Below, one piece after another: positions 1,915-62,161 of a DNA stretch of 64,000 bases. A program made the translations under genes and the position numbers. The stretch lies in the NCBI RefSeq assembly GCF_009834535.1, contig NC_045704.1, positions 17,484,001 to 17,548,000 on the forward strand, in the 5' to 3' direction. The first letter of the stretch is position 1. Each line of letters starts with the position of its first letter. The notes beneath the pieces are model-generated. The model was not told the origin of the DNA and ran no database searches. It saw nothing but the letters and a program-made list of their open reading frames with translations. Source of the DNA: Camelus ferus. Lineage: Eukaryota.

Positions 1915-4900
1915 TTCAATTTGGGGGGATATAAATTCATACATCATAAAAGTGACCCTTTTAAAGTGTACAATTCAGTGGCTTATATATAGTATATTCA
2001 TGCTGGATAACCATCCCCACTAGGTAACTCCAGAACATTTTCATCAGCTCAGAATAAAACCTCGCACCTGTTAAGCAATCATTCCCTGGTCTCCCCTTCC
2101 GTCACCGCCCCCCACCCCACCCCGGGCCACCACTAATCTACTTTCTCTGTGGATTTGCCTCTTCTGGACATTTCATACAAATGAAATCATGCCATATGTG
2201 GCCTTGTATTCAGCTTCTTTCAGAGCATAGTGTTTTCAAGGTTTATCCACAATGTAGTGTGTATCAGTCCTTCATTCCTTTCTACAGCTGAATAATGTAC
2301 AGTTGGTTACATGACATGTATATTCATCACATGTGGACATTTGGATTATTTCCATTATTTGGCNNNNNNNNNNNNNNNNNNNNNNNNNNNNNNNNNNNNN
2401 NNNNNNNNNNNNNNNNNNNNNNNNNNNNNNNNNNNNNNNNNNNNNNNNNNNNNNNNNNNNNNNNNNNNNNNNNNNNNNNNNNNNNNNNNNNNNNNNNNNN
2501 NNNNNNNNNNNNNNNNNNNNNNNNNNNNNNNNNNNNNNNNNNNNNNNNNNNNNNNNNNNNNNNNNNNNCCTTCACATCCTCATCCACACTTGCTATTTCC
2601 ATTTTTTGGGTTATAGTCATTCCTAGTGGGCGTGAAGTGGTGTCTCATTGTGTTTTTAATTTGCAAGTCCCTAATGACCAGTGATGTCGAACGATTTACA
2701 TGCGCTTATTGGCTATTTGTGTATCTTCTTTGGAGAAATTTCTTTCCAAGTCACTTGATTTTTTTTAAGATGTAGTTTCTTTATAATGCGATATTAGTTT
2801 CCAGTGTACAACATAGTGATTCAAAATTTTATAGATCACACTTATTTAAAGTTATTATAAAAAATTGCCTATATTCCCTGTGCTGTACAATATGTCCTTG
2901 TAGCTGATTTATTTTATACATAGTAGGTAGTACCTCTTAGTCCCCTACCCTTATCTTGCCACTTTCCCCTTCCCTCTCCCCACTGGTATAGTTGGTTCTC
3001 TATATCTGTGAGTCTTTTTCTCCTTTGTTATATTCATGTATTTGTTTAATTTTTAGATTCCATATATGAGTGATAACATACATTATTCTTCTTTCTCTGT
3101 CTGACTTATTTCACTAAGCATAATATACTCCAGGTCCATCCATACCANNNNNNNNNNNNNNNNNNNNNNNNNNNNNNNNNNNNNNNNNNNNNNNNNNNNN
3201 NNNNNNNNNNNNNNNNNNNNNNNNNNNNNNNNNNNNNNNNNNNNNNNNNNNNNNNNNNNNNNNNNNNNNNNNNNNNNNNNNNNNNNNNNNNNNNNNNNNN
3301 NNNNNNNNNNNTTAGTTATTGTAAATAATGCTGTTATGAACACTGAGGTTAATGTATCTTTTTGAATTAGTGTCTTCATTTTCCTTAGATATATAACTAG
3401 GGATGGAATTGTTGGGTCATGTGGTAGCTTTATTTTCAGTTTTTTGAGGAACCTTCATACTCTTCTCCACAGTGGCTGCATTAATTTACATTCCCTGCAG
3501 CAGTGTATAAGGGTTCCCTGTTCTCTACATCCTCACCAACGTTTGTTTTTTGTGCTCTTTTTGATGATGGCCATTCTGACAGTGTGAGGTGATACCTCAC
3601 TGTGGATTTGATTTGTGTTTCCCTGATGATTAGCAATGTTGAGCATCTTTTCATGTGCCTGTTGCCCATCTGCATTTCCTCTTTGGAAAAATATCTATTC
3701 AGCTCTTCTGCTCATTTTTTAATCGGATTGTTTGCTTTTTGTCGTTGAGTTGTATGAGCTGTTTATATATGTTGGATATTAACCCCTTATCAGTCATATC
3801 ATTTGCATGTATTTTCTCCCATTCAGTAGATTTTTGTTTGCTTTGTGGATGGTTTCCTTTGCTGTGCAAAAGCTTTTAAGTTTAATTAGGTCTCATTTAT
3901 TTATTTTTGCTTTTATTTCCTTTACATTAGGAGCTGGATGAAAAAAAATGCTGCAGTTTATGTCAAAGAGTGTTCTGCCTATGTTTTCCTCTAGGAGTTT
4001 TATAGTATCAGTCTTACATTTAAGTCTTTAATCCATTTGAGTTTACTTCTGTATGTGTGTTAGAGAATGTTCTAGTTTCATTCTTTTACAGGTAGCTGTC
4101 CAGTTTTCTCAGCACCACTTATTGAAGAGATTGTCTTTTCTCCATTGTATGTTCTTGCCTCCTTTGTCAGACATTAATTGATCATAAGTGCATGGGTTTA
4201 TTTCTGGACTTTCTATCTCATCCCATTGATCTATGTGTCTCTCTTTGTGCCAGTACCATACTGTTTTGATTACTGAACTTTGTAGTATAGTCTGAAGTCA
4301 GGGAGTGTGATTCTTCCAGCTCTGCTCTTTCTCAGGATTGTTTTGACTATTAGGGGTCTTTTGTGTTTCCATGCAAACGTTTAAATCATTTGTTCTAGTT
4401 CTGTGAAAAATGCCATTGATAACTTGATAGGGGTTGCANNNNNNNNNNNNNNNNNNNNNNNNNNNNNNNNNNNNNNNNNNNNNNNNNNNNNNNNNNNNNN
4501 NNNNNNNNNNNNNNNNNNNNNNNNNNNNNNNNNNNNNNNNNNNNNNNNNNNNNNNNNNNNNNNNNNNNNNNNATCTTTTGCCTCCTTAGGTAGGTTTATT
4601 TCTAGTTTTTTTATTTCTTTTGATGTGATGCTAAATGGGATTGTTTCTTTCATTTCTCTTCCTGATAGTTTGTTGTGAGTGTATAGAAACTGCAACAGGT
4701 TTCTGTATATTAATTTTTTATCATGCAGCTTTACCAAATTCATTGATGAGCTGTAGTCGTTTTCTAGGTGGTGTCTTTAGGATTTTCTATCTGTAGTATC
4801 ATGTCATCTGCAAACAGTGACAGTTTTAGCTCTTCCTTTCCAGTTTGGATTTATTTTTTTATTTTTTTATCTTCTCTGATTGCTGGGGNNNNNNNNNNNN

Positions 4901-6150
4901 NNNNNNNNNNNNNNNNNNNNNNNNNNNNNNNNNNNNNNNNNNNNNNNNNNNNNNNNNNNNNNNNNNNNNNNNNNNNNNNNNNNNNNNNNNNNNNNNNNNN
5001 NNNNNNNNNNNNNNNNNNNNNNNNNNNNNNNNNNNNNNNNNNNNNTATGCCTACTTTCTGGAGTTGTTTTTTTTTTTTATTATAATTGGATGTTGAATTT
5101 TATCAAAAGCTTTTTATGCATCTCTTGAAATGACCATTTAGTTTTTATTCTTAATTTTTTAATGTAATGTATTACACTGATTTGCAGATACTGAAAAATC
5201 CTTGCATCNNNNNNNNNNNNNNNNNNNNNNNNNNNNNNNNNNNNNNNNNNNNNNNNNNNNNNNNNNNNNNNNNNNNNNNNNNNNNNNNNNNNNNNNNNNN
5301 NNNNNNNNNNNNNNNNNNNNNNNNNNNNNNNNNNNNNNNNNNNNNNNNNNNNTTTTGGTACAGTGTGATGCTGGCCTCATAGAATGAGTTCAGAAGTGTT
5401 CCTTCCTCTGCAANNNNNNNNNNNNNNNNNNNNNNNNNNNNNNNNNNNNNNNNNNNNNNNNNNNNNNNNNNNNNNNNNNNNNNNNNNNNNNNNNNNNNNN
5501 NNNNNNNNNNNNNNNNNNNNNNNNNNNNNNNNNNNNNNNNNNNNNNNNNNNNNNNNNNNNNNNNNNNNNNNNNNNNNNNNNNNNNNNNNNNNNNNNNNNN
5601 NNNNNNNNNNNNNNNNNNNNNNNNNNNNNNNNNNNNNNNNNNNNNNNNNNNNNNNNNNNNNNNNNNNNNNNNNNNNNNNNNNNNNNNNNNNNNNNNNNNN
5701 NNNNNNNNNNNNNNNNNNNNNNNNNNTGTATTAGTTGCCTAGGGCTGCCGTAGTAAATTACCACAAACTGGGTGGTTTTGTTACCGAACCAGGTTGGCTT
5801 GCCCATTTGCAGCAAGCTGAAGCATCTAGATGAGATTCGCAGTGGCGAGGCTATTCGCAATGCAGCCAACCGAGGAGAAAACAAGTCTCTCGCCTTCTTC
5901 CCCAAAACCAAGGGGATTTATTGGAATAGTTTCTGAAGGATAGGTGTTAACTTCTCTGAACGTTTGGTAGAATTCACTGGTGAAGCCCTCTGGTCCTGGA
6001 CTTTTGTTTGTTGGGAGTTTTTGAATTACTGACTCAATTTCAATACTGGTAATTGGTCTTTTTGCTTTTGATCATATGTTTTGATATACAGTACTGTTTA
6101 GTTTTGGTGAATTCCAATTTATCTGTTTTTTTCTTTGGTTGCTTGTATCC
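1915..6150 (-). mobile_element. Cluster of L1 fragments (3' UTRs and ORF2 end), interrupted by N-gaps and a short MLT1/LTR piece at about 5727-5920
   Basis: Minus-strand ORF fragments TLIQKDT...[40 protein letters not shown] and WMDLEYIMLSEISQ are L1 ORF2 C-terminal motifs. Poly-T-led L1 3' ends are also present. Confidence 0.9.
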
Positions 6151-7904: not shown

Positions 7905-8990
7905 ACGTTTGAAATAGTGCCGCACAAGAGAAATACAACGGGAGCTACTTATGTAATTTTAAGTTTTCTAGCAGTCATATTTAAAAACATAAAAAGAAAT
8001 AGATGAACAAGCATAGGAAAAGATGTTCAACATCATTAATCATTAGGGAAATGCAAATCAAAACCACAGTAAGGTACCACCTCACATCCACTAGGATGAC
8101 TATCATGAAAAACAGAAAAAGAACAAGTGTTGGCAAGGAGGTGGCAAACCGGAACTCTCACGCACCGTTGGAGGGGAGTGGCAAATGGTACAGGCACTGC
8201 GGAAAACAGTATGGCACTTCCTCAGATAATTTGGTATAGAACGACTGTACGGCCCAGCGATTCCACATCTGGCTATATATACCCAACACAACTGAAAGCA
8301 GGGACTTGGATAGATATTTGTACCCGCTTGTTCATAGCAACGTTAGTCACAATAGTCCAAAGGTAGAAACAATCCAAGTGCCCATTGACAAACAAAACGT
8401 GACTGTACATACAATGGAATATTATTCAGCCTCAATAAGGAAGGAAATTCTCATACATGCTGCAACATGGATGAACCTTGAGGATATTATGCTAAGTGAA
8501 ATAAGCCAGTCCCCAAAACAGAAATACTGTGTGATCCCACTCACAGGAGGTCCCTGAGAGTAGTCAAATTCATAGACAGACAAAGTAGAAGGGTGTTTGC
8601 CAAGGGCTGTGGGAAGGGGGAATGAGGAGTTATTGTTTAATCAGTACGGTTTCAGTTTTGCAAGATGAAAACACATTCACACAATGTGAATGCATTTAAC
8701 TACTGAGTTGTACACTTAAAAATGGTTAAAATGGTAGCTTTTATGCAATGTTATTTTACCACAATAAAAAAGTTTAAAATAAACAGGTGAGGTTGATTCT
8801 AGTCATATTTTTATTTATCTCAACATACTCAAAATTGTCACTTCAATATGTAATTAATTTTTACAACTATCAGAATGCTGAATATTCTGTTTATCATACC
8901 AAGCTCTAAAATTCAGCATGTATGTTACACTTAGAGCGCACCTCTGCTAGGGCTGGCCACTTTTCAAGTGCTCAACAGCCATCTGCACAC
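7905..8990. mobile_element. MER33-like hAT element interrupted by an old L1 3' fragment (about 8000-8785, + strand)
   Basis: MER33 motifs occur on both sides (AAGTTTTCTAGCAGTCATATTTAAAAA; TTTCAAGTGCTCAACAGCCA). The insert encodes the L1 ORF2 end ([17 protein letters not shown]; WMNLEDIMLSEISQ). Confidence 0.7.
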
Positions 8991-9280: not shown

Positions 9281-10762
9281 TCAGATAGTCATCTCAAAGT
9301 CAGGGAGGCGGCGGCCTGGGGCAGGGCTGGAGGCCCCCTCCTGCTTCCCTTCCAGCTCTCTGTCCTCTTCCTCGATGCTCTCCTCCTCCTCCTCTTCCAG
9401 GAAGGTGACGAGTTCTTCCCGAAGCGCCCCCATCTCCAGCCCCAGGCTGCACAGCTGGCCCAGCAGCTGGACATCCACTCGGCGGAGGTTCCCCTGTGAG
9501 TGGGAAGGGGGAGTCATGGGCACCCCACCTCAGAGGGCGAGGGGTTAGTGTGCCCCCACCTCGAACCCTGGGTGGGAGTGGCTCCCAGCTCAAGCCCCGG
9601 CATAGATCTTTGCCTGACCAAATTTTAGTGAGGATCCTGAACATTTTCCTGGGCCCATCAGCACTTCCTTGTAAAATCCAGTTTTAGCAAGACTCCCCCT
9701 CCTCCATATCTCATCATTCTCTCAATATCTGATCAGGTTCCTTGCCCTCCCCCCTCCCCCAGGTGATGGCTGCTCACCCTGGCCTGCCTTCAGCAAGAAT
9801 CCTGCTAGGTTGGTTTAGCCAGAATCCCCCCTAACCCCAGATGTTTCCTCTTAGGAATTTTCTGTCCCCTGACCCCTCCCCTGCTCCTTGGCTGTAATTT
9901 TCCTCTTGCCTATGCTGTGTTCGGAGCTGAGCCCATTCTGTTTCCTTTACTGCAAAATCCCACCGCAGTGATCCCCATACTTAGGGCCTGGCCATCTTTC
10001 ACAGGTGTCATCAATTACTTTTTCTTTAAAGGTCCTGGCCCACAGCACATGGGTGGAGTCCTCACTGTGTCCCTGGACTTTAACTGCCATCCTCTTCTGT
10101 CTCTGATCTCTGCCTCTGTCTCCCTCTGCCTTGGCCTCTCCATTCCATTGGCCCTCACTGTCCCCATCTCTCTTTCTCTCTGTGTGTCTTTGAGTCTGTC
10201 TCTTTGTCTCTCTTATTCTGTCTCCCTCTCTTGTTATCCCTCTCTGTCTCTCTGTCTCTGCTTGACTGTCTCTGTCCCTGTCTTTCCAAATCCCTGTCTT
10301 TCTGTCTGTCTCTGTTTCTCTACCTCTCTGTCTCTCAGATTTAATCTGAGTCTGTTGTGGTTCTCAGTCTCTGCTCTCCATATCTTGTCTCTGTCTCGCT
10401 GGGTCTGTCTCCATGTCTTTTTTTTTTTTTCTCTCTCTCTCTCTCTGTGTCTGTCTCTGCCCCTACTTCTCTAGTCCTGTCTCTCACTTTCTGTCTTTCA
10501 ATCTGCGGCCTTTTTATTTCCATACATTCCCCATCATTCATCCATTCTCTCCACCTCCATCTCTTGCCCCTCCAAACCCCTCACTCACCAGCTCCTCCCA
10601 GATCCACAGCAGACTCTCCCTGGCACTTCCAGTGTCAGCCCCTGGGAACATGAGGGTCTGACCCACCTTCTCCACTGGGGGGAACCCGTTCAGGGCCCGG
10701 GGAGGTGGGCCCAGCCCCGGAGGCACCAGTCCAGCCTGCCTCAGCTGCTTCCACAGCTCCAT
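9281..10762 (-). CDS. ERICH4: Glutamate-rich protein 4; complement(join(9281..9493,10589..10762)), 128 aa
   Basis: Exon 1 reads MELWKQLRQAGLVPPGLGPPP...WIWEEL|GTGAGT. Exon 2 reads CAG|GNLRRVDVQLLGQLCSLGLEMGALREEL...EEEEEE...stop. The junction is phase 0, and the gene is in the syntenic position next to DMAC2. Confidence 0.9.
10090..10500. repeat. (TC/TG)-rich low-complexity tract in the ERICH4 intron
   Basis: Long degenerate TCTCTG/CTCT runs are visible directly. Confidence 0.85.
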
Positions 10763-12431
10763 AGTCTTTGGGTAGTGACAGCCAGGAGCAGGAAGTAGCA
10801 AGGTCCAGAGTGACCCAGTCCCCCAGGGAGCTGGGGGGAGGGGAGTAAAGGGCAGTAGGGGTGGGGGAGGGGGACTGGGCATCCCAAAGTCCATTTTCCC
10901 CTGAGAATCAGCAGCCTCGTGTGGGTTTTGGTTTTTTTGTTTGTTTTTCATACTGAAGTTTAACTTCAACTCTGTTCTTAAGAATCCAACCACAGCCCCT
11001 TTGGCGGAGGTCAGACACCACTGTCCCTGACTCTTCTCAGGCAGGACCCCTCACCGGGTGTGTGGATGCGCTGCCTCATCCTTCCTGCCCCCTCCTGGGT
11101 CCTTCCAACTGCTCCTCCCCAGCCTCCCCTGCAGCCTTCTCCACTTGACCTCTGGCTTCCTCCTGCTGGGTCTTTGCCTGTATTCTCCACTCCAGCCCTC
11201 CCACAGCTCCCTGATCCATGTGCCTGAGGAGCCAGAAGTGGCTTCCAAGAGAACGATTCCTTGGCTGCAGTGCCTCGGTGTCCAGGCTGCTGGCCCACAG
11301 CTGAGCAGCCAGTTCTGCCCACCCTAGACTTGCCTGCAGTCATTATCACTAGCATCTTGGGCCCTGCCACGGAGAAGGTCAGGATGCACTGTGGGCCACC
11401 CTCAGCTAGAACCCCTCTTTCAGGGGTGTGAAAATTCCACCTATATGTCAATGGCTCCCCCGTCTCTGACTCTAGTCCTGACCCCCAGACCTTTACTCAG
11501 CATCTCCACCTGGACGTCTCAGCCATCTCATGACCATGAATATGGTCAAAACAGATCTCTCAGCTNNNNNNNNNNNNNNNNNNNNNNNNNNNNNNNNNNN
11601 NNNNNNNNNNNNNNNNNNNNNNNNNNNNNNNNNNNNNNNNNNNNNNNNNNNNNNNNNNNNNNNNNNNNNNNNNNNNNNNNNNNNNNNNNNNNNCCGGGAG
11701 GCTCCAGGGAAGAATCCATTTCCTAGCCTTTCTTAGCTTCTAGAAGCCACCTGCATTCCTTGGCTCATAAGCCCTTCCCTGCATCCTTCCAACCTCTTGC
11801 ACCTGTCATCACATCTCCTACTTCTTGACTCTTCTGCCTCCATCCAAATAGGACTTTCGTGATTACACTGGGCCCATCGAGATCATCCAGGATAACCTCC
11901 CCATCTCAAGATACTTAATCACATCTTCCCTTTACCATATAAAGTAACATATTCACAAGCTCCGGGAATCAAGATGTAGATATGGGGGGGGCGCTATTCA
12001 GCCTACCACACCTACCTTTCTGTACCTGCTGCTTTCCCAGTTTCCCCATCTCCATAAATGGCATCACTATTCTTTTAGTTTCTCAAGCTATTGGCTTTGT
12101 CCTCAAAACACTCATAACCTGGGCACTTCTCACCATTTCCATTGCCCCGTTCCTGCTACTGCCCACAGGACTCATCTCCTGCCTGGACTATTGCAGTAGC
12201 CTCTTCCCTGAACCCTGCTTTCCCCCCTTGCCCTCTAAGGTCTGTTTTCCACTGGGCAGAAATGATCCTTAGAAAATGTAAATCAGATCATGCCCCTGCA
12301 AATGGAATAAATTAGTCAGCTTCTTGCTCACCTCTCTGACCCAGTCTCCCACCTCTCTCTGCAAGCTGGTCCCACCTCTGAGCCTTTGCACTAGCTGTTA
12401 CCTCTGCCTGAAACACATTTCCCCCAGATCT

Positions 12432-13221
12432 TTTTTTGTTTAATTTATTGAAGTATAGTCAGTTTACAATGTTGTGTTAATTTCTGGTGTACAGCATAAA
12501 TTTCAGTTATACCTATACATACATATATTCATTTTCATATTGTTTTTCATTATAGGTTACTACAAGATATTGAATATAGTTCCCTGTGCTATACAGAAGA
12601 AACTTACTGTTTTTCTATTTTATATATAGTAGTTAGTATCTGCAGATCTTGAATTCCCAATTTATCCCTTCCCACCCCCTTTCCCCACTGATAACCATAA
12701 GTTTACTTTCTGTGAGTCTGTTTCTGTTTTGTAAATAAGTTCATGTTTTTTTTTTATTTTTTTTATTTTTTAGATTCCACATAAGAGTGATATCNNNNNN
12801 NNNNNNNNNNNNNNNNNNNNNNNNNNNNNNNNNNNNNNNNNNNNNNNNNNNNNNNNNNNNNNNNNNNNNNNNNNNNNNNNNNNNNNNNNNNNNNNNNNNN
12901 NNNNNNNNNNNNNNNNNNNNNNNNNNNNNNNNNNNNNNNNNNNNNNCATCTTCTTTATCCAGTCATCTACTGATGGACATTTAGTTTGCTTCCATGCCTT
13001 GGCTATTGTATATATTGCTGCTGTGAACATTGGGGTGCATGTGTCTTTTGGAATTAGAGTTCCCTCCAGATATATGCCCAGGAGTGGGATTGCTGAATAG
13101 AACGGTAAGTCTATTTTTATTTTGGGGGGGAATCTCCATACTGTTTTCCATAATGGCTGTACCAAACTACATTCCCACCAACAGTGTAGGAGGGTTCCTT
13201 TTTCTCCACACCCTCTCTAGC
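12432..13221 (-). mobile_element. 5'-truncated L1 (ORF2 end, 3' UTR and A-tail); 3' part of a chimeric retrocopy
   Basis: The minus-strand [15 protein letters not shown]...KDTCTPMFTAAIYTIAKAWKQTKCPSVDDWIKKM is L1 ORF2. The A-rich tail lies at 12432-12450. Confidence 0.9.
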
Positions 13222-13233
13222 AAAACAACCCCA

Positions 13234-13319
13234 CGACGGTTAGATACGTATTGTCAGGCCCGAGTGACTCTTTCATCCTTGTCAAGGGGAGTGCTATCCT
13301 TCTCTCTTTCATACAACAC
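13234..13319 (-). pseudogene. RNU6ATAC: U6atac (RNU6ATAC) snRNA retrocopy fused to L1
   Basis: The minus strand reads GTGTTGTATGAAAGAGAGAAGGATAGCACTCCCCTTGACAAGGATGAAAGAGTCACTCGGGCCTGACAATACGTAT-CTAACCGTCG. This matches human U6atac as recalled from nt 1, with about 7 differences over nt 1-77, then nt 111-120. An identical 12-bp TSD (TCCCCCAGATCT) lies at 12420-12431 and 13320-13331. Confidence 0.9.
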
Positions 13320-14059
13320 TCCCCCAGATCTCTGAATGGCTGTTTTTCGCTAAAATGTCATCTCTTCACAAAGGTCTTTGCCGGTGGCCCTATGCCTCAG
13401 TCACTCCCTTTTATAGTGCCTGTTTTTATTTGCCTCTTATCAAACACTGTCTGAAATTATCTTGCCTATTCATTTGTTTCTTACCCATCCTCTCTCTGCC
13501 TGGAATGTTGACTTCCTGCCGAAGAAGCTTGGTCTGCCCTGTTCACCACGGCAACCTCAGTACCGAGAACAGTGCCTGCCACGTGGTAGAGACTCAGTAA
13601 ATATTTGTAGAATGAATGAATAATTCTATCCATAAGACCTCGTATTGAATTTTCACGGCAAATTCCAGCCTTGAACTCCAAACTAAAATTGTGAACACAT
13701 CACAATGCTAGTCTTGAGATCCCACTTCTGTCCCTTACCTAGATCTAACCTCAACACCCACCACCCACACCTTTCCCGTCCCTAACCCTGCTTTAAAGAA
13801 AGAAGCCAACAGTTTCTTAGCGCATCATTCCCTTTTCTAGGGAGGTAGCAAGCCAGAGCTAGAGGAACAGGAAAGCTGAGGGGGGCTGTGAGTGCAGTGG
13901 GAGGTCAGGAAGGTACTCCAACAGGAAGGAATGCCCACCCTCTTCTAGGGAAATGCTGCGGAGTCCCACATACTAAGGCCCGTGGAAGAAGGGACGCCAA
14001 CCGATCCTTAACCCCTAGAAGAGTGAAAAGTGTGTGTTCCTTTAAGAGGAGGGTTGGAA

Positions 14060-14160
14060 AACGGAGGGGGCGTGGCCATGAGAAAAGACACCCGAGCCTG
14101 AATCGGATGGGTAGGATTAAAAAAAAGGCCAGCCCCTTCCGGTTACGTAGTCTTAACAAG
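14060..14160 (+). promoter_or_regulatory. DMAC2 CpG-rich proximal promoter
   Basis: GC-box-like GGGCGTGGC at about 14068, ETS core CTTCCGG at 14136-14142 and TTACGTAG at 14143-14150, all directly before the ATG. Confidence 0.6.
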
Positions 14161-17100
14161 ATGGTGGCGCCGAGGACGGTGGGTGACTTTAGTTAGAGCC
14201 CCTAAAATTAGCCCCTCTGCCTTCAGGGCTTCTGTCGGCCCCCAGGAAGCAAGGAGCAGGAGGGAGCAGAGGGCCTGTCCCGCTAACTCTCACGCTGAGC
14301 GGAGACGTGTGGCCGCAGGGGGTCGGGAAGGATCCGTGCGGGTCACAGACCGCAGAGGAGAGAAACCAGTGGGGAAGCAGGGCGTTCGGTGTGAGAAAGC
14401 GCGCCCAGCCAGTTAGGAAGGGATCCGACTGCGGGCGGGTGAGAGTGGGACCTGCAAGGGATGAGGGTTTGGAAGGGATTGGCCGAGAAACTGGGATTTG
14501 AGGTCCTAGGGTAGGGGACCAAAGGATACAAATGAGGGCAACTCATGGGAGAGTTAGGAATTTTGATGGAAAGCCAAAGGGATGATGGGTGTAGGGGGGG
14601 GGCAGGAACCAAGAGGTGAATTTGGGAATTCCAAGGAAGGACCTAGGAGAAATTAAGGGGAGAATTTGCCATATTGGTGGAGAGAATTTAGGAAGAATGG
14701 GCAAAATCAAGGGATAGACTTAACGAAAAATTAAAGTAAGAGGTTGGCAAGGTTCACAGCCGCACTATGTACAACAGCCAAGACATGGAAGCAACCTAAA
14801 TATCCATCCACAGATAACTAGATAAATAAGCTGTGGTATATTTATACAATGGAACACTACTCAGTGATTTAAAAAAAGGAATAAAATATTGCCATTTGTA
14901 GCAACATGGATAGACCAGGAGATCTTCATTCTAAGTGAAGTAAGCCGGAAAGAGAAAGAAAAATACCATATGATATCATTCATACGTGGAATCTGAAAAA
15001 AAAAAAAAGAAAAAAAAGACACTAATGAACTCATCTACAAAACAGATTTGCAGACATAGTAAACAATCTTATGGTTACCAGAAGGGAAGAGGGTGGGAAA
15101 GGATAAATTTGGGAGTTTGAGATTTGCAAATGTTAGCCACTATATATAAAAGTAGATATAAAAAAGCAGATTTCTTCTGTATAGCACAGGGAACTATATT
15201 CAATATCTTGTAATAACCTTAAATGAAAAAGAATATGAAAACGAATATATGTATGTATACGTGTGACTGGGACATTGTGCTGTGCACCAGAAATTGACAC
15301 ATTATAACCGACTATACTTAAATTACAAAAAAAAAAAGGCTAGATGACATTCAATTAAGAAATGAAGTAAGATTGGGAGCTTAAGAGGAATTTTGAGGGA
15401 AAATAAGAATTTGGGCAAAATTATCAGGAGAATGTGGTTAAAGCAAAAGGAGAAATGGAAGAGGCTAAGAGAAAACTTCAGAGGGGAAATTGAAGGAAGA
15501 GTTTGGGAGCTTTAACAAGTTAAGGGTGGTTTGGAGAAAAGATTATATTTGGGGTAAAGGAATGTGTTATTCAGGAAGACTCTGGGGAGAATTGGATAAA
15601 ATTAAGAGGAGAATTTGTGGGAAACTAAGAGGTCAGATAATAGAGGTTTTGAGAAAATAAGGGTTTGGGGGAAATTGGGAGGATTTGGGGAAACCAAGAA
15701 TATTTGGCCAAATCAAGGAGAATTTAGGAGCAGAACTTGGGGAAAACATGAGGACATTTTGTGGATCCCAGAGAATTTGGAAGTTCTGAATGGAGGATTA
15801 AGTGAGCGGAAAGCTTTGGGGAGGGGGATTTGTGGAGCAAGCACAGGGGGATCCCGCTGTGTGTCTCACAGGAGGCTCCAGGCTCAGCCCCTCCTCCCGT
15901 CTCCTCTTCCCCAGTCCCTGCGCCTGGCGGCCCCGGTATGGAACTGGGGTACCGGCAGCATCCGTGGCCTGAGCAGGGCAGTGGACCCGGAGGGCATTCA
16001 GAGGAAGGGGAGGACGCTGTTCCAGTTCCTGGCAGACCGATTCTATGACGTGGCGGCCGTGAGGGAGTACCTGCTCCGAAAGCAGGTGTTGAAGGTGCAC
16101 CAGAAGAATCGGTGAGAATCCCTGGCCTGCAAGACCCTGCTGTTCAGGCCTCCCTAGTCGGTGCCCACCCTGCCCTTGCCACTCCAGGCGGTGCCAGCTA
16201 TGCCCGCTTGCAGCGTCATCTCCAGCCCACACCTTTCCCACATTCCAGCGCATAAAGGCCGCCTGCCGCCCACCATCTCCTCTTGGAGTTCGAGCTGGCA
16301 CTTCAGACTATGTGGCTAACAGCACACCCTTGATTCCCCCTAGAAAGTCTTCTCACCCCAAGCCTTCTCCATCCCAGTGAACAGCCACATTCTGAGGAGT
16401 CATCCCTGATTCCTCTCTTTCCATCCCTTCCGTCCACATCCAGTCCATCAGTAAAATACTAGAATGTCACAGGTTTGCCCAGCGGTCATCTCTTACCTGG
16501 TCACCTCTTGCCCCTACAGTCTGTCATAGTCTCCAGAGCAGCCAGAGGACTCTTCAGAGAGCAGAATGGGTCACATGACTGCTTTGCCTCAAACCCTCAA
16601 ATGGTTTCCAGTCGCAACTAGAATAAAAGCCAAACTCTGAGGCTGAAAACCTGGCCCCTACTGAGCTTTGAGACCTCCACCAGAGACTCCCCCAACCCCG
16701 TCAGCTGATGGCCTTACTGCTGTTCGTTCAGCCATCCTAATTCAAGCCTCCAAGCCTTTGCACTCGCCGTTCCTTGGCCTGGCAGACTCTTGCCTTGACA
16801 TCTGCGTTCCTTCTCCCACTCATTCTCTGCTCAAGTGTCATCTCCTTCAAGAAGCATTTCTTCCTTTTTTTCCTATCATTACATCATTTTTATTAGTGAT
16901 TTTTATACTGTGAAATATTTGCTACATTTTTTGATGACATTCATAGTTCATTCAGAATCAGGCTTTCTGGGTTTCAGTAGGTGCATGAATATTAATTACT
17001 ACACAAATATAAAACTGTTATTCTGAAATAAGTTTCCTCAAGATTATTTTTATGTGGCTAGAATGACATGTCATGAAATAGAACAGAACTTTTCATTTGA

Positions 17101-19422
17101 ATATAACTCTTTATTCCTAAGAAGCATTTCTTAACACCCAAACTAAATTAGCCTCCTCTGTCCCTACCCCTGACCCAGCCCACTCCTAGTCTGTTCTTCT
17201 GTGTTAAGATCATCATGGAATTGATACTCTGCAGTTTGTTACCTGTTTCCCCCAGTGAAATAACTTCACAAGGGCGGGGCTGGTTATCTGCCTTGATCAC
17301 CACCGTCCCCTGGTGCCCAGCACCTAACAGGCACTCAGTAAATATTTGCAGTCTGAGTGTGTGTGTCCCCCTGCCTGCCTGCCTGCGTCTTGTGCTGTGG
17401 ACTCTGACCGTGTCAGCAGCGCCGGGGCCTGACGACGGGTGTGGTGCTGCCAAGCCTTATCCTCACTCTCCTCCCGGCAGGTCCTTCACCTACATCAAGG
17501 AGCGATACGGCCCGTACGTGGCAGGTGCCCACTTCATCCTGAAGCAGGGAGGCGCAGTCAAGTATGACGACAAAGGTGCAGAATGGGGTTGGGGGAGGCG
17601 GGAGAGCGGCTCCAAGCCCCAGGCTCTTCAGTCAGACAGGCTTCTGTGCGCCCCCCAGTCTCTGTCCCCTCCTAGCTGTGTGACTTGGGACTTGTTCCTG
17701 AGCTTCAGTTTTGTCATCTGTAAAATGGGTTTGCTGTAAAGATTCAAAGCCATTTTGCAATCCAGACAGTTGTAACAGGCCCGGCCTGGCACGTGTGCTC
17801 AGTCAGTGTTGGTGCTGCTTTTCTTTGCTCTTTCCCCCTTCCTTTCTCATTCTTACCTTCCTCCTCCTCCTCCCTTTTTTCTGCCTTTTAAATATTTTAT
17901 TATATATGTTTTTGTTTTGGGGGGAGGTAGTTAGCTTTATTTATTTATTTATTTTTAATGGAGGTACTGGGGATTGAACCCAGAACTTCATGCGTGCTAG
18001 GTATGCGCTCTACCTTCACCCCTACCTTTACTTTTTTGAAAAACAAAATTCATGTAAGCTTCATCAACCCCTCATCTTGGTTCCAGTTAAGATTCTCACT
18101 TGGTTTGAACACTCCCTCCAGCACCTGGAAATGCCTCAACTTTTGCCCATCTACAGGGAGTCTGGTCTTAGAGCTCTATTCTCTTCTGTTATCAGTAATC
18201 TCTTTGACCCTCAGCTTCCAGGTATGTAAAATTGGCCAAACCTTCCATCTTTGATGGGGTTGTCAGGGGATCCAATGAGGACAGACACGTAAAGCCCTTA
18301 GTCCAGGGCCTGGAATATAGTAAGTGCGCCAGGCCCAGTACAGTCGTTGTGTTATATGGGCTGCGAGTGTTCTCAAGAAGTTGGTGGCCTAGGGAGGGGT
18401 AGGGTACCCTGCAAACCCTGTCTTCCTTTCCAGGTTTCAGGACAAGGAGTGGATGCGGTCAAGTGGGCGTGGTCTGTCCTTTCTTGAGTTCTGGGAGTTC
18501 CGGGCGGTGCCCATAGAGGCTGTCGATGCCAGTGGCTGTGCCATCAACTACCAAGGCCTGGACCACCTCTGTGAGTGGGGGGTGGGGATGGGCAGGGCTC
18601 TGCACTTTCCCTTTCGTGGTGAGCTCCAGAAGGGCCCTCGGTGCCATCTGCCCTCTCCCCCCTCTAGTGGCCCTGAAGGAGCTCCAGTCCCTGTCGCTGC
18701 GGTGCTGTCCCCACGTGGATGACTGGTGTCTTAGTCGCCTCCACCAGCTGGCCGACTCACTGCAGGAGCTCTCGCTGGCTGGTTGCCCCCGAATCTCTGA
18801 ACGGGGCCTCGCCTGCCTCCACCACCTCTGGTGAGACCTCAGCTCAGGCTGGGCCCCAGGCCAGGCGAGGCGCTACCACCCAGCACAGATACATGGGAGA
18901 GGGAGTGGGGAGGGGGCGCCGCTGGGCAGCTCCCGCATTCCTGCCTCCAGGACAGAGTCAGTGTTTGTGGTGATGAGCACAGCTGAGCAGCACGGCAGAC
19001 CCCTGGGAGAAAGGAGGACCCCTGGTTTTTTTGTTTTAATGGAACTCCATGATATTTACACTGTTGCAAAACAAGAGGAGCCAGAGGTGTCTGTAACTAA
19101 CATGGTGGGTCTCATGTACTTGGGCCCTCAGACTTTTATTTTAGGAAGCTGGGGGTTGAAGTGGGGGCGGGGGCAACCCCCTCCCTACCCTGATGCAGAC
19201 ACGCAGTCCTTAGGCGGGCCTCCCCCATCTTGCCTCCTCAGGAACCTCCGCAGGCTGGACATCTCCCACCTCCCTGCTGTGTCCAACCCGGGCCTCACTC
19301 AGATCTTGGTGGAGGAGATGCTGCCCAACTGTGAGGTTCTGGGGGCTGGCTGGGCCCAGGGCCTCAAGTTGGGGCTGGAGGAGCAGTCGCAGGACACAGC
19401 CAGCAGCCCCATCCCTGCCTAG
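14161..19422 (+). CDS. DMAC2: Distal membrane arm assembly component 2 (ATP5SL, complex I assembly); join(14161..14178,15915..16111,17481..17561,18434..18570,18668..18830,19242..19422), 258 aa
   Basis: Six GT-AG-bounded exons total 777 nt in frame: MVAPRT|[10 protein letters not shown]...[11 protein letters not shown]...|[27 protein letters not shown]|FQDKEW...[16 protein letters not shown]|...LRR-like [20 protein letters not shown]...|NLRRLDIS...SSPIPA*. Confidence 0.93.
14752..15337 (+). mobile_element. L1 3' fragment in DMAC2 intron 1
   Basis: Runs from GTTCACAGCCGCACTATGTACAACAGCCAAGACATGGAAGCAACC through GCACAGGGAACTATATTCAATATC to an A-tail. Confidence 0.9.
17905..18014 (-). mobile_element. 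Camelid tRNA-derived SINE (vic-1-like), 5'-truncated
   Basis: GGTAGAGCGCATACCTAGCACGCATGAAGTTCTGGGTTCAATCCCCAGTACCTCCATTAAAAATAAATAAAT on minus; same family as the copies at 30630, 61549 and 62046. Confidence 0.75.
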
Positions 19423-23267: not shown

Positions 23268-23706
23268 GTAAAGACAGAGCAGCGCCTGGGGTGAGGACTT
23301 GGGCGGTAGAGGGAGGCTGGTTTCTGGTTTCCACGAAGGTGGAAGGAGGGGACCCTGTGATCCTGACTCCCGGTAAGGGGGATGAACTGGTGGGAGAAGG
23401 TTGGAAGGGCGGAGTACCGGTCTCTAGGGTGGGGATGGGGTTGAGGATGAGGAAGAGGCAGCCTCCTGAGTTTCTAGGAAGGTGGAAGGAGCTGGGCTGA
23501 TGGTGGAAGAGCAGGGTGTTGTAATGGGAGCAGGGATCCACAAGTCCAGGAAGAGGGGAAAGTCCTTGCTGGAGGGCTGGTTTAGGGTCTGGGACTGTGA
23601 GAAGCCTTACTGGGGTTGGCAGGGGCTGGAGGGCTCATCCCTGCACCCCAAAGGCCTCTGTGGTTCCTTTGCAGCTCCCACAGCTGCCCCTTCCCTGGGT
23701 CGGGTC

Positions 23707-24900
23707 ATGCGCTGCCCCAAGTGCCTCCTCTGCCTGTCAGCACTGCTCACACTCTTGGGCCTCAAAGTGTACATCGAATGGACGTCAGAGCCTCGGCTTA
23801 GCAAGGCCTACCCCGGACCCCGCAGCACCCCGCCAGGCCCCACGCCAGCCTGCCCTGAGCCCACCCTGCCGGCTAACCTTTCAGCCCGTCTGGGCCAAAC
23901 TGGCCCGCTGCCCATGGCTTACTGGAACCAGCAGCAGTGGCGGCTGGGGACCCTGCCCAGCGGGGACAGCACTGAGGCGGGAGACTGCAATGCCTGGGGG
24001 GCTGCTGCTGCTGCCGAGATCCCAGACTTCACCTCCTACCCCGAGGACCTCCGCCACTTCTTGCTGTCGGCAGCCTGCCGGAGCTTCCCACAGTGGCTGC
24101 CTGGGGGTGGCGGCGGCCAAGTGGCCAGCTGCAAGGATTCTGACGTCCCCTATCTGCTACTGGCCGTCAAGTCGGGACCAGGGCGCTTCGCGGAACGACA
24201 GGCCGTGAGGGAGACATGGGGCGGGCCGGCTCCGGGGGTCCGGCTGCTCTTCCTGCTGGGGTCTCCGGAAGGCAAGAGGGGGCCTGACTTAGGCTCCCTG
24301 GCGGCCTGGGAGAGCCGCCGCTACAGCGACCTGCTGCTCTGGGACTTCCTCGACGTCCCCTTCAACCAGACGCTCAAAGACCTGCTGCTGCTGGCCTGGC
24401 TTGGCCACCACTGCCCCAGTGTGCGCTTTGTCCTGCGAACCCAGGACGACGCCTTCGTACACATCCCTGCCCTGCTGGACCACCTGCGGGCCCTGCCGCC
24501 CAGCAGGGCCAGAGTCCTCTATCTGGGCGAGGTCTTCACCCAGGCCAAGCCCCTCCGGAAGCCTGGAGGACCCTTCTACGTGCCTGGGTCCTTCTTCGAA
24601 GGCAGCTACCCGGCCTACGCGAGCGGGGGCGGCTATGTCATCGCCGGGCGCCTGGCACCCTGGCTGCTGCAGGCAGCAGCCCGCGTGGCCCCCTTCCCCT
24701 TTGACGACGTCTACACAGGCCTGTGCTTCCAAGCCCTGGGCCTGGTGCCCAGGACCCACAAAGGCTTCCTTACGGCCTGGCCAGCGGACCGCACCGCTGA
24801 CCCCTGTGCCTTCCGCGACCTGCTGCTGGTGCGGCCCCTCAGCCCCCAGGACAGCATCCGGCTCTGGAAACAGCTGCAGGACCCTCAGCTCCAGTGCTGA
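23707..24900 (+). CDS. B3GNT8: UDP-GlcNAc:betaGal beta-1,3-N-acetylglucosaminyltransferase 8 (GT31), single coding exon, 397 aa
   Basis: MRCPKCLLCLSALLTLLGLKVYIEW is a type II anchor. GT31 motifs LLLAVKS, RQAVRETWG, DFLDVPFNQTLK, YPAYASGGGY and FDDVYTGLC are present, ending LQC*. Confidence 0.96.
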   Translation: MRCPKCLLCLSALLTLLGLKVYIEWTSEPRLSKAYPGPRSTPPGPTPACPEPTLPANLSARLGQTGPLPMAYWNQQQWRLGTLPSGDSTEAGDCNAWGAAAAAEIPDFTSYPEDLRHFLLSAACRSFPQWLPGGGGGQVASCKDSDVPYLLLAVKSGPGRFAERQAVRETWGGPAPGVRLLFLLGSPEGKRGPDLGSLAAWESRRYSDLLLWDFLDVPFNQTLKDLLLLAWLGHHCPSVRFVLRTQDDAFVHIPALLDHLRALPPSRARVLYLGEVFTQAKPLRKPGGPFYVPGSFFEGSYPAYASGGGYVIAGRLAPWLLQAAARVAPFPFDDVYTGLCFQALGLVPRTHKGFLTAWPADRTADPCAFRDLLLVRPLSPQDSIRLWKQLQDPQLQC

Positions 24901-57400: not shown

Positions 57401-58699
57401 CCCTGGGTTAGATGCCCTGCATTATCATCTCAAGGATTCCTCTCAGTAGCTCTATTCCTATCCCAATTCTGCAGATAAGGAGACTGAGGCTCAGAGATGT
57501 GTGCTCACTTGGCCAAGGTAAACAACTGGTACTAGGATCCACCAGCAGTTTGCAACCCAGGGCTGTGTTTCTTGCTGGCCCAAAGAGAGGGGAGAAAGCA
57601 GAGGCAGCAGGTGAGGTAGGGGCTTTCAGGGAAAGGGTGCGGAGGTGGGAGTGGGCCAGGGGTGGCGTGCTACTTATCAGGTGGTACAGGTGGTGGTTAT
57701 GAGGCAGTGTTTGGACCCACACAGACCTTTCCTTTCCAGGCTCTTCAAGGCACCTGCTATATGACCTCTGGATAATGGCATCACCTTTCTGAGCCCCCAA
57801 TTTCTTCATCTGTAAAATGTAGTAAATACTCCCTGCCTCTTACATGTGATAATATATATAAAACACTTAGATTAGGTGCCATAACAAATGTCCAACATCT
57901 GCCCCAAACTAGGCACTCCGAACATGTCTGGTATTTAGGAATATAATTATTTATTTCCATCTTCATCAGTCTGATTAGAGGATTTCTCACCCTGCCGGCC
58001 TCCACCTCTTTCAGGGAGCCCACCCATCTTGCATTGGCTTCCCTTTCTCGGAAGCCCTCCATCTCACCAGTCCCAGACAGTCAAACTGGAGGATTCCCTT
58101 CCTGATGTGGGGCCGGCCAGAGTTCCCTTGCTCCAGGGCTCTGGGGCTCCGTGCCAAGAGTCCAGACGCTGGAGCTGGCACAGGCCCCACTCCCGGGGAG
58201 AGCAGATGGTGTCTGGAAGTGCACTTGGCTCAGCCAGAGTTTCTGGCAGACAACAGGCGGGGAGATCCACGGAGGGAAGATGAGAGACCTGTTTTATGGG
58301 GAGAGAGACCCTGTTACTCTCTGTCTCCTTAACCTCGCTCTTATTGCTTATCACTATGAAACATATATTTCTGTTGTTTGTAGTTTGAATCCTCCCACAT
58401 CAGTGTCAGTTCCAGCCAGGCTGGGATTTGATCTCTTTTGTTCACTGCTGTGCCTCAGGGCCTAGAACAGTGCCTGGCACAAAGCAGGGCTTCAATACAT
58501 ATTTGTGGGGTGGGGGCATGAATTCCCACCAGCCTGTTTTTTTTACCAAACCTCTGAGCAATATAGGTCCCTCCGACTCCCTTGTCCACCCTAGAGATTT
58601 ATTCATGTCCAGTAGATCTCTCTGGCTGCCATCAGCCTTGTATAGTCAGTCTCCCCAGGATACCACAAGAGACCCTGGCCTCTTGGAGTTTGTGATGGT

Positions 58700-61030
58700 C
58701 GTGGAATATTAAACATGAGATTCCAGCCAGGATCATCAACAGAAGCCTAAACACTGACTGAAAGTTTGATGAGGAACAGAATATTTATTAAGTCTCAAAG
58801 TATGCTCCCACAGATCATATATTTATTACAAAGGGAAAAAAATAGTAATAACGGACAATATCACTGTAACCAGGAGATAGAAATTAACATCAGTATTAGG
58901 ACAAATCAACATTGTGTCCCTCCTGATATACACTTAGGACACAACATCATTTCTGTGATTTTTCTGCCAAAAATGCATCATCTGAATCTAATCATGAGAA
59001 AACATGGGACAAAGCCAAATTGAGGGACACAGTATAAAGTAGCTGGTCTATACTCTTCAAGAATGTCAGTGTCATGAAAACCAAAACAATAACAAAGATT
59101 TAAAAGCTGGAAGCCTGTTCTAGATCAAAGGTGACTAAGGAAACATGACAACAAAACACAAAGTGTGATCCCGGAGGGAGAGCAGATGGTGATAAGGTAT
59201 GTTATTGGGACAGTGGGCGAAATTTGAATATACACTATAAATTAGATGATAGTTTTGCATCAATGTTAAATTGATACTTGGGGAAATGTTAAATTGGTAT
59301 TTTGGTTATATAGGAGAATCCTCTTGTTCTTAGGAGAATTTTATTGTTAGAAATAATGAGTTATGGGTATAATATATATGTATATATCTGTATATATATA
59401 CACACACATAAAATCAAGCAAAAGAATTGAACAAAAATTTCACAAAAAGAGGAAATCCAAGGGAGCAATGAACATTTAAAAAGTTACTCAACTAGTCATC
59501 AGGGAAATGCAAATTAAAATCACAATGCGATACCAGTACACACCCACCAGAACAGCTAAATGAAGGAACACACCACCAGGAAATGTTGGTGAGGATGGGG
59601 TTGGGGGGGCTCTCATACACTGCTGGTGGGCATCCAAATTGGTCCAACCACTAGGAAAACTTGTTGGGCAGTTACTACTGTAGCTGAACATATCCTATGA
59701 CCCAGCAATTTCACTCCACTCAGATCTGAACATATGTCCACCAAACATATGTCAACAGATGGATAAATAAAGTGTGGCATCTTCACACAGAGGAAACTAT
59801 ACAGCAATGAGAATGAAAGATCTACAGCCATATGCAATAGCGTGAATGAATTTCACAAGCAAAACACAGCCAAAGACAGCAGACACAAAACAATGCATAC
59901 TGTGCGACTTCATTTCCACAAAGTAAAAAACAGGCAAAATTAATCCATATTGTTAGAAATCCAGTTAGTGGTTTCCCTTGGGGGCATCTTGGAAAAGGCA
60001 TGATGGGCATCCTAGGGGGCTGGTCATGTTCTTTACATGGGCTGAGTTCTGGTTACCAGGTTCATTCAGTTCATGAAATTTAATCCAGCTGCTCATTTAT
60101 GATTTGTGCACTTTACTGTACATATATTATACTTCAAAACATTTATTTTTGAAAAAGAGTGAGTTAGATCTTTACATACTGATGTGGATAAATTTCCAAG
60201 ATGTATCACTGGGTGAAAAATGCAAGATATAAAACAATGTGAATAGTCACTATNNNNNNNNNNNNNNNNNNNNNNNNNNNNNNNNNNNNNNNNNNNNNNN
60301 NNNNNNNNNNNNNNNNNNNNNNNNNNNNNNNNNNNNNNNNNNNNNNNNNNNNNNNNNNNNNNNNNNNNNNNNNNNNNNNNNNNNNNNAGCATTATTAACA
60401 ATAGCCAGGAAAAGGAGGAAGTAACCCAACTGTACATTAACAGATGAATGGATAAAGAAAATGGGCTGAATATTATTCAGCCTTAAAAAGGAAGAAAATT
60501 CCGTGCTGATCATTTTGTAATATATAGAAATACTGAATCATTATGTTGTATACCTGGAACTAACATGGTGTTGTAGGTCAATTATACTTCAAATTTAAGT
60601 ATATAATTATAAATAAAGAGTATAATTATAAATAAATAAAAGACTGCTATATAATTTTTTTAAAAAAAGGAAGGAAATTCTGACATGCACTACAGCATGG
60701 ATGACCCTAAAGGACATTATGATAAGTGAAATAGACCAGTCATAAAAGGACAAACAATGAATGATTCTACTCATATGGGCGCCTAGAGTTGTCAAATTCA
60801 TAGCAACAGAAGGTAGATAGGTGGTTACCAGAGGGCTGGAGGAAGGGAGGGATGGGGAGTTTTTGTTTAATAGGTACAGAGTTTCAGTTCTGCAAGATGA
60901 GAATAGTTCTAGAGACTGGTTGCACAACTGTGTGCATGTACTTAATGCCACTGAATTGTACACCTAAAGACAGTTAAAATGGTAAATTTTATGTTATGTG
61001 TATTTTATCACAATTTTGAAAACCTTAAAA
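58700..61030 (+). mobile_element. Old L1M (L1MC/ME/MB-like) fragments, with a nested younger L1 3' end at 60502-60663
   Basis: L1 ORF2 and 3' UTR motifs are present. The nested piece is flanked by AAAAAGGAAG(A/G)AAATTC at 60485-60501 and 60664-60680. Confidence 0.75.
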
Positions 61031-61189: not shown

Positions 61190-61905
61190 TTGTATTAGTT
61201 ATTACTGCTGTGTAACAAATTATCTCCCCAAACTTACTGGCTTAAAACAATAAACATTTATCATCAGACATAGTTTTTGTTGGTCAGCAATCTGTTGATG
61301 ACTTAGCTGGCTGGTTCTGGCTTAGGGTGTCATGAAGTTACAGTCAGCATGTTGGCCAGGTGCAACAGTCACCTGAAGATTTGATGTGGCTGAAAGGTCT
61401 CCTTCCAAGATGGGTCACTCACATGGTGCTGGTTGTTGGCACGGGGCCTCAGTTCTTCCCCACTGGGGTCTCTCCACTGGCTGCTTCACTGCTGTCACAA
61501 TCTGGTGGCTGGTCTCTCTCAAGCTGAGCCATTCAAGAGAGACATTGAGGGGGTAGGTATGTATAGCTCAGTGGTAGAGCACGTGCTTAGCATGCACGAG
61601 GTCCTGGGTTTAGTCCCCAGTACCTCCATTAATAAACAAACAAACAAACAAATAAATAAACCTAATTATGTTCCCCCTCCAAGTGAAAAAAAAAAGAGAG
61701 AGAGGGAGAGGAGGAAGCCTCAATGCCTTTTATGGCCTAGTCTCAGAAGTCACACACCAACCACTTCTACCATATTCCACCGGTTAGAAGCAAGTTACAA
61801 AGTGCAGCCTATACTCAAGAGGAGAGAAATTAGGCTCTACCAAGTGAAAGAAGGAGTGTTAAAGAGTCTGTGGACATATTTTAAAATAGCTTCATACATT
61901 CATTA
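61190..61905 (-). mobile_element. MLT1 LTR containing a vic-1-like SINE (61549-61694, +)
   Basis: TGTATTAGTTATTACTGCTGTGTAACAAATTA...GGCTTAAAACAA marks the MLT1. The SINE head is TATAGCTCAGTGGTAGAGCACGTGCTTAGCATGCACGAGGTCCTGGGT. Confidence 0.75.
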
Positions 61906-62045: not shown

Positions 62046-62161
62046 TGGGGGAAGGGGGTAATTAGCTTTATTTATTTATTTTTAATGGAGGTACTGGGGA
62101 CTGGACCCAGGACCTCACGCTTGCTAAGCATGTGCTCTACCACTGAGCTATACTCTGCCCC
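62046..62161 (-). mobile_element. Camelid vic-1-like SINE with TSD
   Basis: Full tRNA-like head on minus. It is flanked by CTGGGAGGCATTTTT and CTGGGAAGCATTTTT (1 mismatch). Confidence 0.8.

Follow-up and report, generated by a model that had tools for sequence, protein, structure and literature searches.

A U6atac snRNA-L1 chimeric retrocopy shared by Camelus and Vicugna

Upstream of DMAC2, the Camelus ferus genome contains a U6atac snRNA copy that is attached to the end of an L1 element. It was noticed in an earlier sequence-only reading of a 64,000-nucleotide stretch of this genome (here called the window, whose numbering is used for all coordinates that are not assigned to another locus), and the observation is confirmed: the chimera is a retrotransposed U6atac copy joined to an L1 tail. 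The best explanation, to which we give a probability of roughly 0.93, is that a single L1-mediated event in the stem lineage of living camelids put a chimeric cDNA into an old L2-like repeat.

Structure of the insertion

Read on the minus strand, the locus runs from the flank through AGATCTGGGGGA (13331..13320), U6atac, T4, L1, AATAAA and an A-rich tail to a second AGATCTGGGGGA (12431..12420) and the other flank. The features of the insertion, with the nearest ERICH4 exon, are listed below; TSD denotes a copy of the target-site duplication.

10590-10765, minus strand: ERICH4, assigned by peptide identity
12300..12419, plus strand: left flank, the upstream part of the interrupted old repeat, limits approximate, from outgroup alignments
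12420..12431, no strand assigned: TSD at the 3' side of the insert, directly past the A-tail, an exact 12-mer
12432..13221, minus strand: 5'-truncated L1 3' end (ORF2 C-terminal fragment plus 3' UTR), 790 nt including a 152-nt mask, from paralog homology and the ORF2 frame
13222..13319, minus strand: U6atac snRNA retro-pseudogene, 98 nt, Rfam RF00619, with the same structure in three camelid species
13320..13331, no strand assigned: TSD at the 5' side of the insert, TCCCCCAGATCT on the plus strand, an exact 12-mer that is identical in dromedary and alpaca
13332..13625, plus strand: right flank, the 3' part of the interrupted old L2-like repeat, limits approximate, from outgroup continuity with the left flank

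The sequence-only reading had described a single perfect 12-bp TSD around the whole unit, and this description is accurate. When both strands of the 64 kb are considered, TCCCCCAGATCT occurs at only two sites (12420-12431 and 13320-13331), which exactly bound the unit. A match of this kind is expected by chance with a probability of ~6e-8 to 7e-8 at a fixed register, or ~7e-6 if 5 bases of slack are allowed on each side.

Distribution in camelids and outgroups

Besides C. ferus, the chimera is present in Camelus dromedarius (L006 and L007, from two assemblies) and in Vicugna pacos (L005), whose locus is 96.5-96.9% identical to the window. For these comparisons, which run from window position 11800 on, a Camelus ferus locus (L001; GCA_009834535.1, CM020776.1) was fetched via the ERICH4 protein. 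Dromedary and alpaca have both TSD copies, the short U6atac, and the joint GTTGTTTT followed by GCTA, all as in C. ferus, and the U6atac scores that Rfam gives in the dromedary and alpaca loci are 66.5 and 71.3 bits.

Empty sites were sought with a reconstructed sequence consisting of one flank, one TSD copy and the other flank. In Przewalski's horse (L008 7526-8985), a single HSP of 1496 columns crosses the site at 77% identity, and exactly one AGATCTGGGGGA is found in this locus. Alignments also extend across the junction in warthog (L003) and Blainville's beaked whale (L004), each of which has one target copy with a one-base difference. Thus the clean empty site with a single TSD copy that the sequence-only reading anticipated is found in horse, warthog and beaked whale. 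The hippo locus (L002) likewise has one target copy, and its flanks align in two pieces. Rfam gives no U6atac match in the hippo, warthog and whale loci, which are the outgroup loci covered by that scan (the horse and otter loci lay outside it).

In the otter locus (L009), nothing can be aligned to the site, and this locus is uninformative. Sequencing runs of three organisms contain 0.79-0.92 of the sampled words, and these shares are silent on presence or absence of the insert, which makes up 21% of the query.

The chimera is present in both living camelid tribes and absent in a perissodactyl and three non-camelid cetartiodactyls, and therefore the polarity of the change is fixed. Judged from these alignments, the stem camelid lineage acquired the insertion once, when it had already separated from the other cetartiodactyls and Camelus and Vicugna had not yet diverged. 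This interval would extend from roughly 60 to 20 million years ago. The suggestion that the copy is lineage-specific also agrees with the data, in that it is camelid-only among the loci compared.

Other changes are visible near the site. In hippo, an unrelated SINE-like insertion of ~130-155 nt with an A-rich, (CAAA)n-like end (L002 ~8080-8224) lies a few bases from the target, and is a hippo-specific, independent event in the same short stretch of old repeat. In the 5' flank at ~13345, ~15 bp from the insertion, camelids are without 16-17 nt of the old repeat. These 17 nt are full in warthog and whale and mostly kept in horse and hippo, which makes this a small lineage-specific deletion.

The distribution also bears on whether the two parts arrived together. 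A U6atac retrocopy might have landed precisely on the 5' edge of an L1 3' fragment that was already in place, or the L1 fragment might have joined an older U6atac copy. Two such events best explain one human U6atac/Alu case in which no TSD is present (Doucet 2015, PMC4476161), and the 7 extra nt near the camelid joint (see below) mean that this junction is imperfectly clean. However, neither poly(A) nor a TSD lies between U6atac and L1, no TSD surrounds either part alone, and the only direct repeat bounds the whole unit. Moreover, all three camelid species hold both parts and the informative outgroups hold neither, as the earlier claim of a single retrotransposition event implies. Two independent events are therefore very improbable.

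Target site and interrupted repeat

The alignments of horse, warthog and whale join the left and right flanks, which were contiguous before the insertion; it was correctly recognized from the camel DNA that an old repeat is split. The repeat resembles an L2 3' region in plus-strand sense that ends near 13625. Two other places in the window match the terminal ~100 bp of the right flank: 58428-58525 weakly (68%, direct orientation) and 42005-41974 over 32 bp on the reverse strand. No paralog of the host repeat that spans the target was found in the window. Weak paralogs of the left-flank segment are present in DMAC2 introns of hippo, warthog, whale and horse, and one hippo paralog of the host repeat spans the target region.

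As read today, the nick on the plus strand is ATCT/CT. The consensus for the L1 endonuclease is TTTT/AA. The base immediately outside the upstream TSD is A in all four outgroups and G in camelids. If A was present at the time of insertion, the nick would have been CTTT/GA, which is closer to the consensus, and the duplication would have been the 14-bp AAAGATCTGGGGGA. In this 14-bp version, the first As of AAAGATCTGGGGGA would merge with the A-tail.

The U6atac portion

Rfam model RF00619 (U6atac) matches the minus strand at 13319..13220 with 63.6 bits (E 3e-14; gathering score 33), and this is the sole Rfam snRNA match in the 64 kb. The match spans model positions 1-126. Model position 1 corresponds to 13319, where the copy opens with GTGTTGTATG on the minus strand, so the proposed start exactly at snRNA nt 1 holds. 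The T4 that closes this part is at 13225..13222. Within the 3' stem-loop, 29 Rfam model positions are replaced by 7 nt. The extent first given for U6atac, 13234-13319, needs correction: the U6atac-derived part reaches 13222 and is without ~33 nt of the 3' stem-loop.

A visual comparison with the U6atac sequence given in bioRxiv 10.1101/2021.08.01.454689 located the missing segment. By this comparison, the copy corresponds to reference nt 1-77, minus one G and with a few substitutions. Reference nt 78-110, which comprise 33 nt of the 3' stem-loop and have GCAT direct repeats at both bounds, are absent, and nt 111-121 follow the gap, exactly so in alpaca. The 7 extra nt, GGGGTTG, occupy 13232..13226, just 5' of T4. 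Both the 33-nt loss and the extra nucleotides are common to all three camelid species, and therefore arose at insertion or soon after. It is conceivable, though rather doubtful, that they are footprints of the insertion itself, in which the L1 reverse transcriptase skipped a stable hairpin and added or copied bases near the joint. In that case, the locus would preserve a natural trace of what ORF2p does with a structured snRNA template, and might help to decide between ligation and template switching. Dating of the insertion from substitutions was abandoned: the 88 aligned nt have only ~4 that are shared, and a date would also call for the camelid source gene.

Could the copy instead be a functional or expressed U6atac gene variant? 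Its 5' 77 nt are well conserved, including the segments used for pairing to U4atac and to the intron, and its Rfam score is well above threshold. Also, NCBI-type pipelines often call such matches snRNA genes. However, direct reading of the sequence immediately upstream reveals a TSD plus an old repeat in place of a type-3 Pol III promoter. The 3' stem-loop is largely lost, several substitutions have occurred, and T4 runs straight into L1, which is the architecture of a retrocopy. Because the copy has no promoter context and keeps little of the 3' stem-loop, we infer that it is a dead pseudogene, and a functional gene seems even less probable than two separate insertions.

The L1 portion and its masked stretch

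The L1 segment (13215..12431) is homologous to two further L1 3' ends in the window, with 80-83% identity to the paralog at 14748-15335 (plus strand) and about 67-71% identity to the one at 3534-2851 (minus strand). When it is aligned with the older paralog, homology starts at ~13221, right after T4, and the sequences are unrelated above that point. At the other end, the alignment to paralog positions 14972-15335 extends to 12431, and the L1 part thus reaches its natural 3' end. AATAAA is at 12449..12444, followed by the A-rich tail (~9-11 nt) at 12440..12432, and both are found in camel and alpaca. This arrangement, in which T4 is followed by L1 homology from ~13221 to AATAAA and the tail, is a head-to-tail joint, and it bears out the earlier description of a U6atac copy that continues into an A-tailed, 5'-truncated L1 3' end.

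A single stop-free frame of 91 codons covers 13221..12947 and represents the ORF2 C-terminal region, with the motif HCWWEC. An N run of 152 bases follows (12795-12946). Past this run the ORF2 frame continues in the same register to a stop at 12772-12770 (motif CGI*). A Pfam search with the short ORF2 fragment gave no match.

The N run at 12795-12946 is a mask and not a gap. The Camelus ferus locus L001 is free of N and 100% identical to window positions 11800-12794 and 12947-14740; by coordinates alone, these anchors are exactly 152 bases apart in it. Between the same anchors, alpaca has 144 bases and the L1 paralog within the window has 138. Because 152 true bases are present and the ORF2 frame is in register, both sides are continuous and belong to one L1 fragment.

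In total, the window has nine N runs of 128-313 bases (2364-2568, 3148-3311, 4439-4572, 4889-5045, 5209-5352, 5414-5726, 11566-11693, 12795-12946 and 60254-60387), and their irregular lengths suggest masking rather than assembly gaps, as does the true length of the run inside the chimera.

That the chimera spans a 152-N stretch could mean that the sides of the run are unrelated and the "L1" is two pieces joined by an assembly or masking artefact, but this least probable of the alternatives is refuted by the ORF2 frame kept across the run and by the lengths in L001, alpaca and the paralog, and four assemblies from three species agree.

The two paralogs have features of their own. The L1 at 14748-15335 (plus strand), a second 5'-truncated 3' end, belongs to the same family as that of the chimera. 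It follows the DMAC2 ATG by ~590 bp, presumably within DMAC2 intron 1, and alpaca has it too (L005 10586-11171). The L1 at 2851-3534 (minus strand) is an older, more diverged 3' fragment, in which an N mask occupies the place that corresponds to the mask in the chimera.

Gene context

The insert is located inside the 3.4-kb intergenic region between ERICH4 and DMAC2, which are divergently oriented. It is 1655 bp from the ERICH4 ATG (10765), and position 13331 is 830 bp from the DMAC2 ATG (14161). The earlier placement upstream of the DMAC2 ATG is therefore right, and the distance of ~840 bp given with it is replaced by 830 bp.

Both genes were identified from exons that were searched singly. 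A minus-strand ORF (10538-10993; Pfam DUF4530) contains an exon-1 peptide with 100% identity to ERICH4 (glutamate-rich protein 4) of Camelus ferus. The last-exon peptide at ~19240-19419 (plus strand) matches, with 100% identity over that region, a DMAC2 cluster whose representative is the Vicugna pacos protein and whose members include the Camelus ferus and C. dromedarius DMAC2 proteins. In L001 and in L005, the annotated start of DMAC2 corresponds to window position 14161, where the ATG opens MVAPRTV. Farther downstream, a Galactosyl_T ORF (23482-24900, plus strand) fits B3GNT8. The gene order is therefore ERICH4 (minus), DMAC2 (plus) and the B3GNT8-like ORF (plus), with BCKDHA beyond it in the alpaca locus.

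Additional RNA matches were encountered in the window and in related loci. Rfam tRNA matches at 61557-61628 (plus strand, 48.9 bits) and 62091-62153 (minus strand, 39.8 bits) may be tRNA genes or the heads of tRNA-derived SINEs. U1 snRNA matches are present in hippo (L002 15994-16165, 98.7 bits) and beaked whale (L004 16068-16230, 135 bits), ~4.5 kb downstream of ERICH4. No U1 match above the Rfam threshold was found in the camel window or in the warthog, alpaca and dromedary loci.

Proposed mechanism

In the single L1-mediated event favored here, the cDNA would have combined U6atac, copied from nt 1 as far as the U-tract, with the ~790 nt at the 3' end of an L1 RNA and its poly(A). Priming at the target nick would then have led to the 12-bp (possibly 14-bp) duplication. 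The joining itself could have taken either of two routes. The reverse transcriptase might have switched templates, from the 5' end of the truncated L1 RNA to the 3' end of U6atac. Alternatively, RtcB might have ligated U6atac, through its 2',3'-cyclic phosphate end, to a cleaved L1 RNA before reverse transcription. Both routes fit the sequence of this one locus, which does not favor either. The copy would later have become fixed as a non-functional pseudogene and undergone neutral decay.

Several observations count against this explanation. The nick ATCT/CT is a poor match to TTTT/AA, and the better CTTT/GA applies only if the outgroup A is ancestral. Neither a simple ligation nor a simple template switch predicts the 33-nt internal loss and the 7 extra nt by the U-tract. 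Finally, the A-tail is short, at ~9-11 nt.

Comparison with known snRNA chimeras

Human U6atac/L1 chimeric pseudogenes were reportedly also described by Buzdin in 2003 and Garcia-Perez in 2007. The camelid copy is like the human U6atac/L1 chimeras in running from snRNA nt 1 to the U-tract, and in having a same-orientation joint to a variably 5'-truncated L1 with poly(A). In both, one TSD surrounds the whole unit, as for a single event. In contrast to the human chimeras, the camelid copy is in another host lineage (Camelidae) and involves another L1 family. It is also distinguished by the absence of ~33 nt of the stem-loop, the 7 additional nt by the U-tract, and a nick that is non-canonical as read.

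The U6/L1 chimeric pseudogenes (Moldovan 2019, PMC6789731) have the same architecture as the camelid copy, whose snRNA differs in being the low-abundance minor-spliceosome paralog. Polyadenylated or 3'-truncated U6atac processed pseudogenes (PMC4476161) derive from the same snRNA and are likewise L1-mediated and flanked by TSDs. These pseudogenes have no attached L1, whereas in the camelid copy the snRNA is separated from the A-tail by 790 nt of L1.

The sequence-only reading had referred to snRNA/L1 chimeras as an established class explained by template switching or RtcB, and such chimeras are indeed described for both U6 and U6atac in human. Among the human U6atac copies analysed, 7 of 23 are repeat-associated (6 with a TSD), and these were credited to template switching; for U6, 14 of 36 copies are repeat-associated (Doucet 2015, PMC4476161). 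The statement that U6atac chimeras are much rarer than those of U6 is thus true of absolute numbers and not of proportions (7/23 versus 14/36). RtcB ligation has been shown for U6/L1; U6atac has the 2',3'-cyclic phosphate end too, and could therefore be joined to L1 RNA in this way as well (Moldovan 2019, PMC6789731).

Conclusions

The kind of element reported here is already described in human, and the camelid locus is an ordinary further example. Its practical value is modest, and it opens no long-standing question. For annotation, the Rfam U6atac match near the DMAC2/ERICH4 promoter should be labeled a pseudogene, not a gene. For the family, the insertion is a clean, homoplasy-poor marker that unites Camelus and Vicugna, and the loci of horse, hippo, whale and the pig lineage do not have it. 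The insertion also shows that L1 in stem camelids made snRNA chimeras, as human L1 does.
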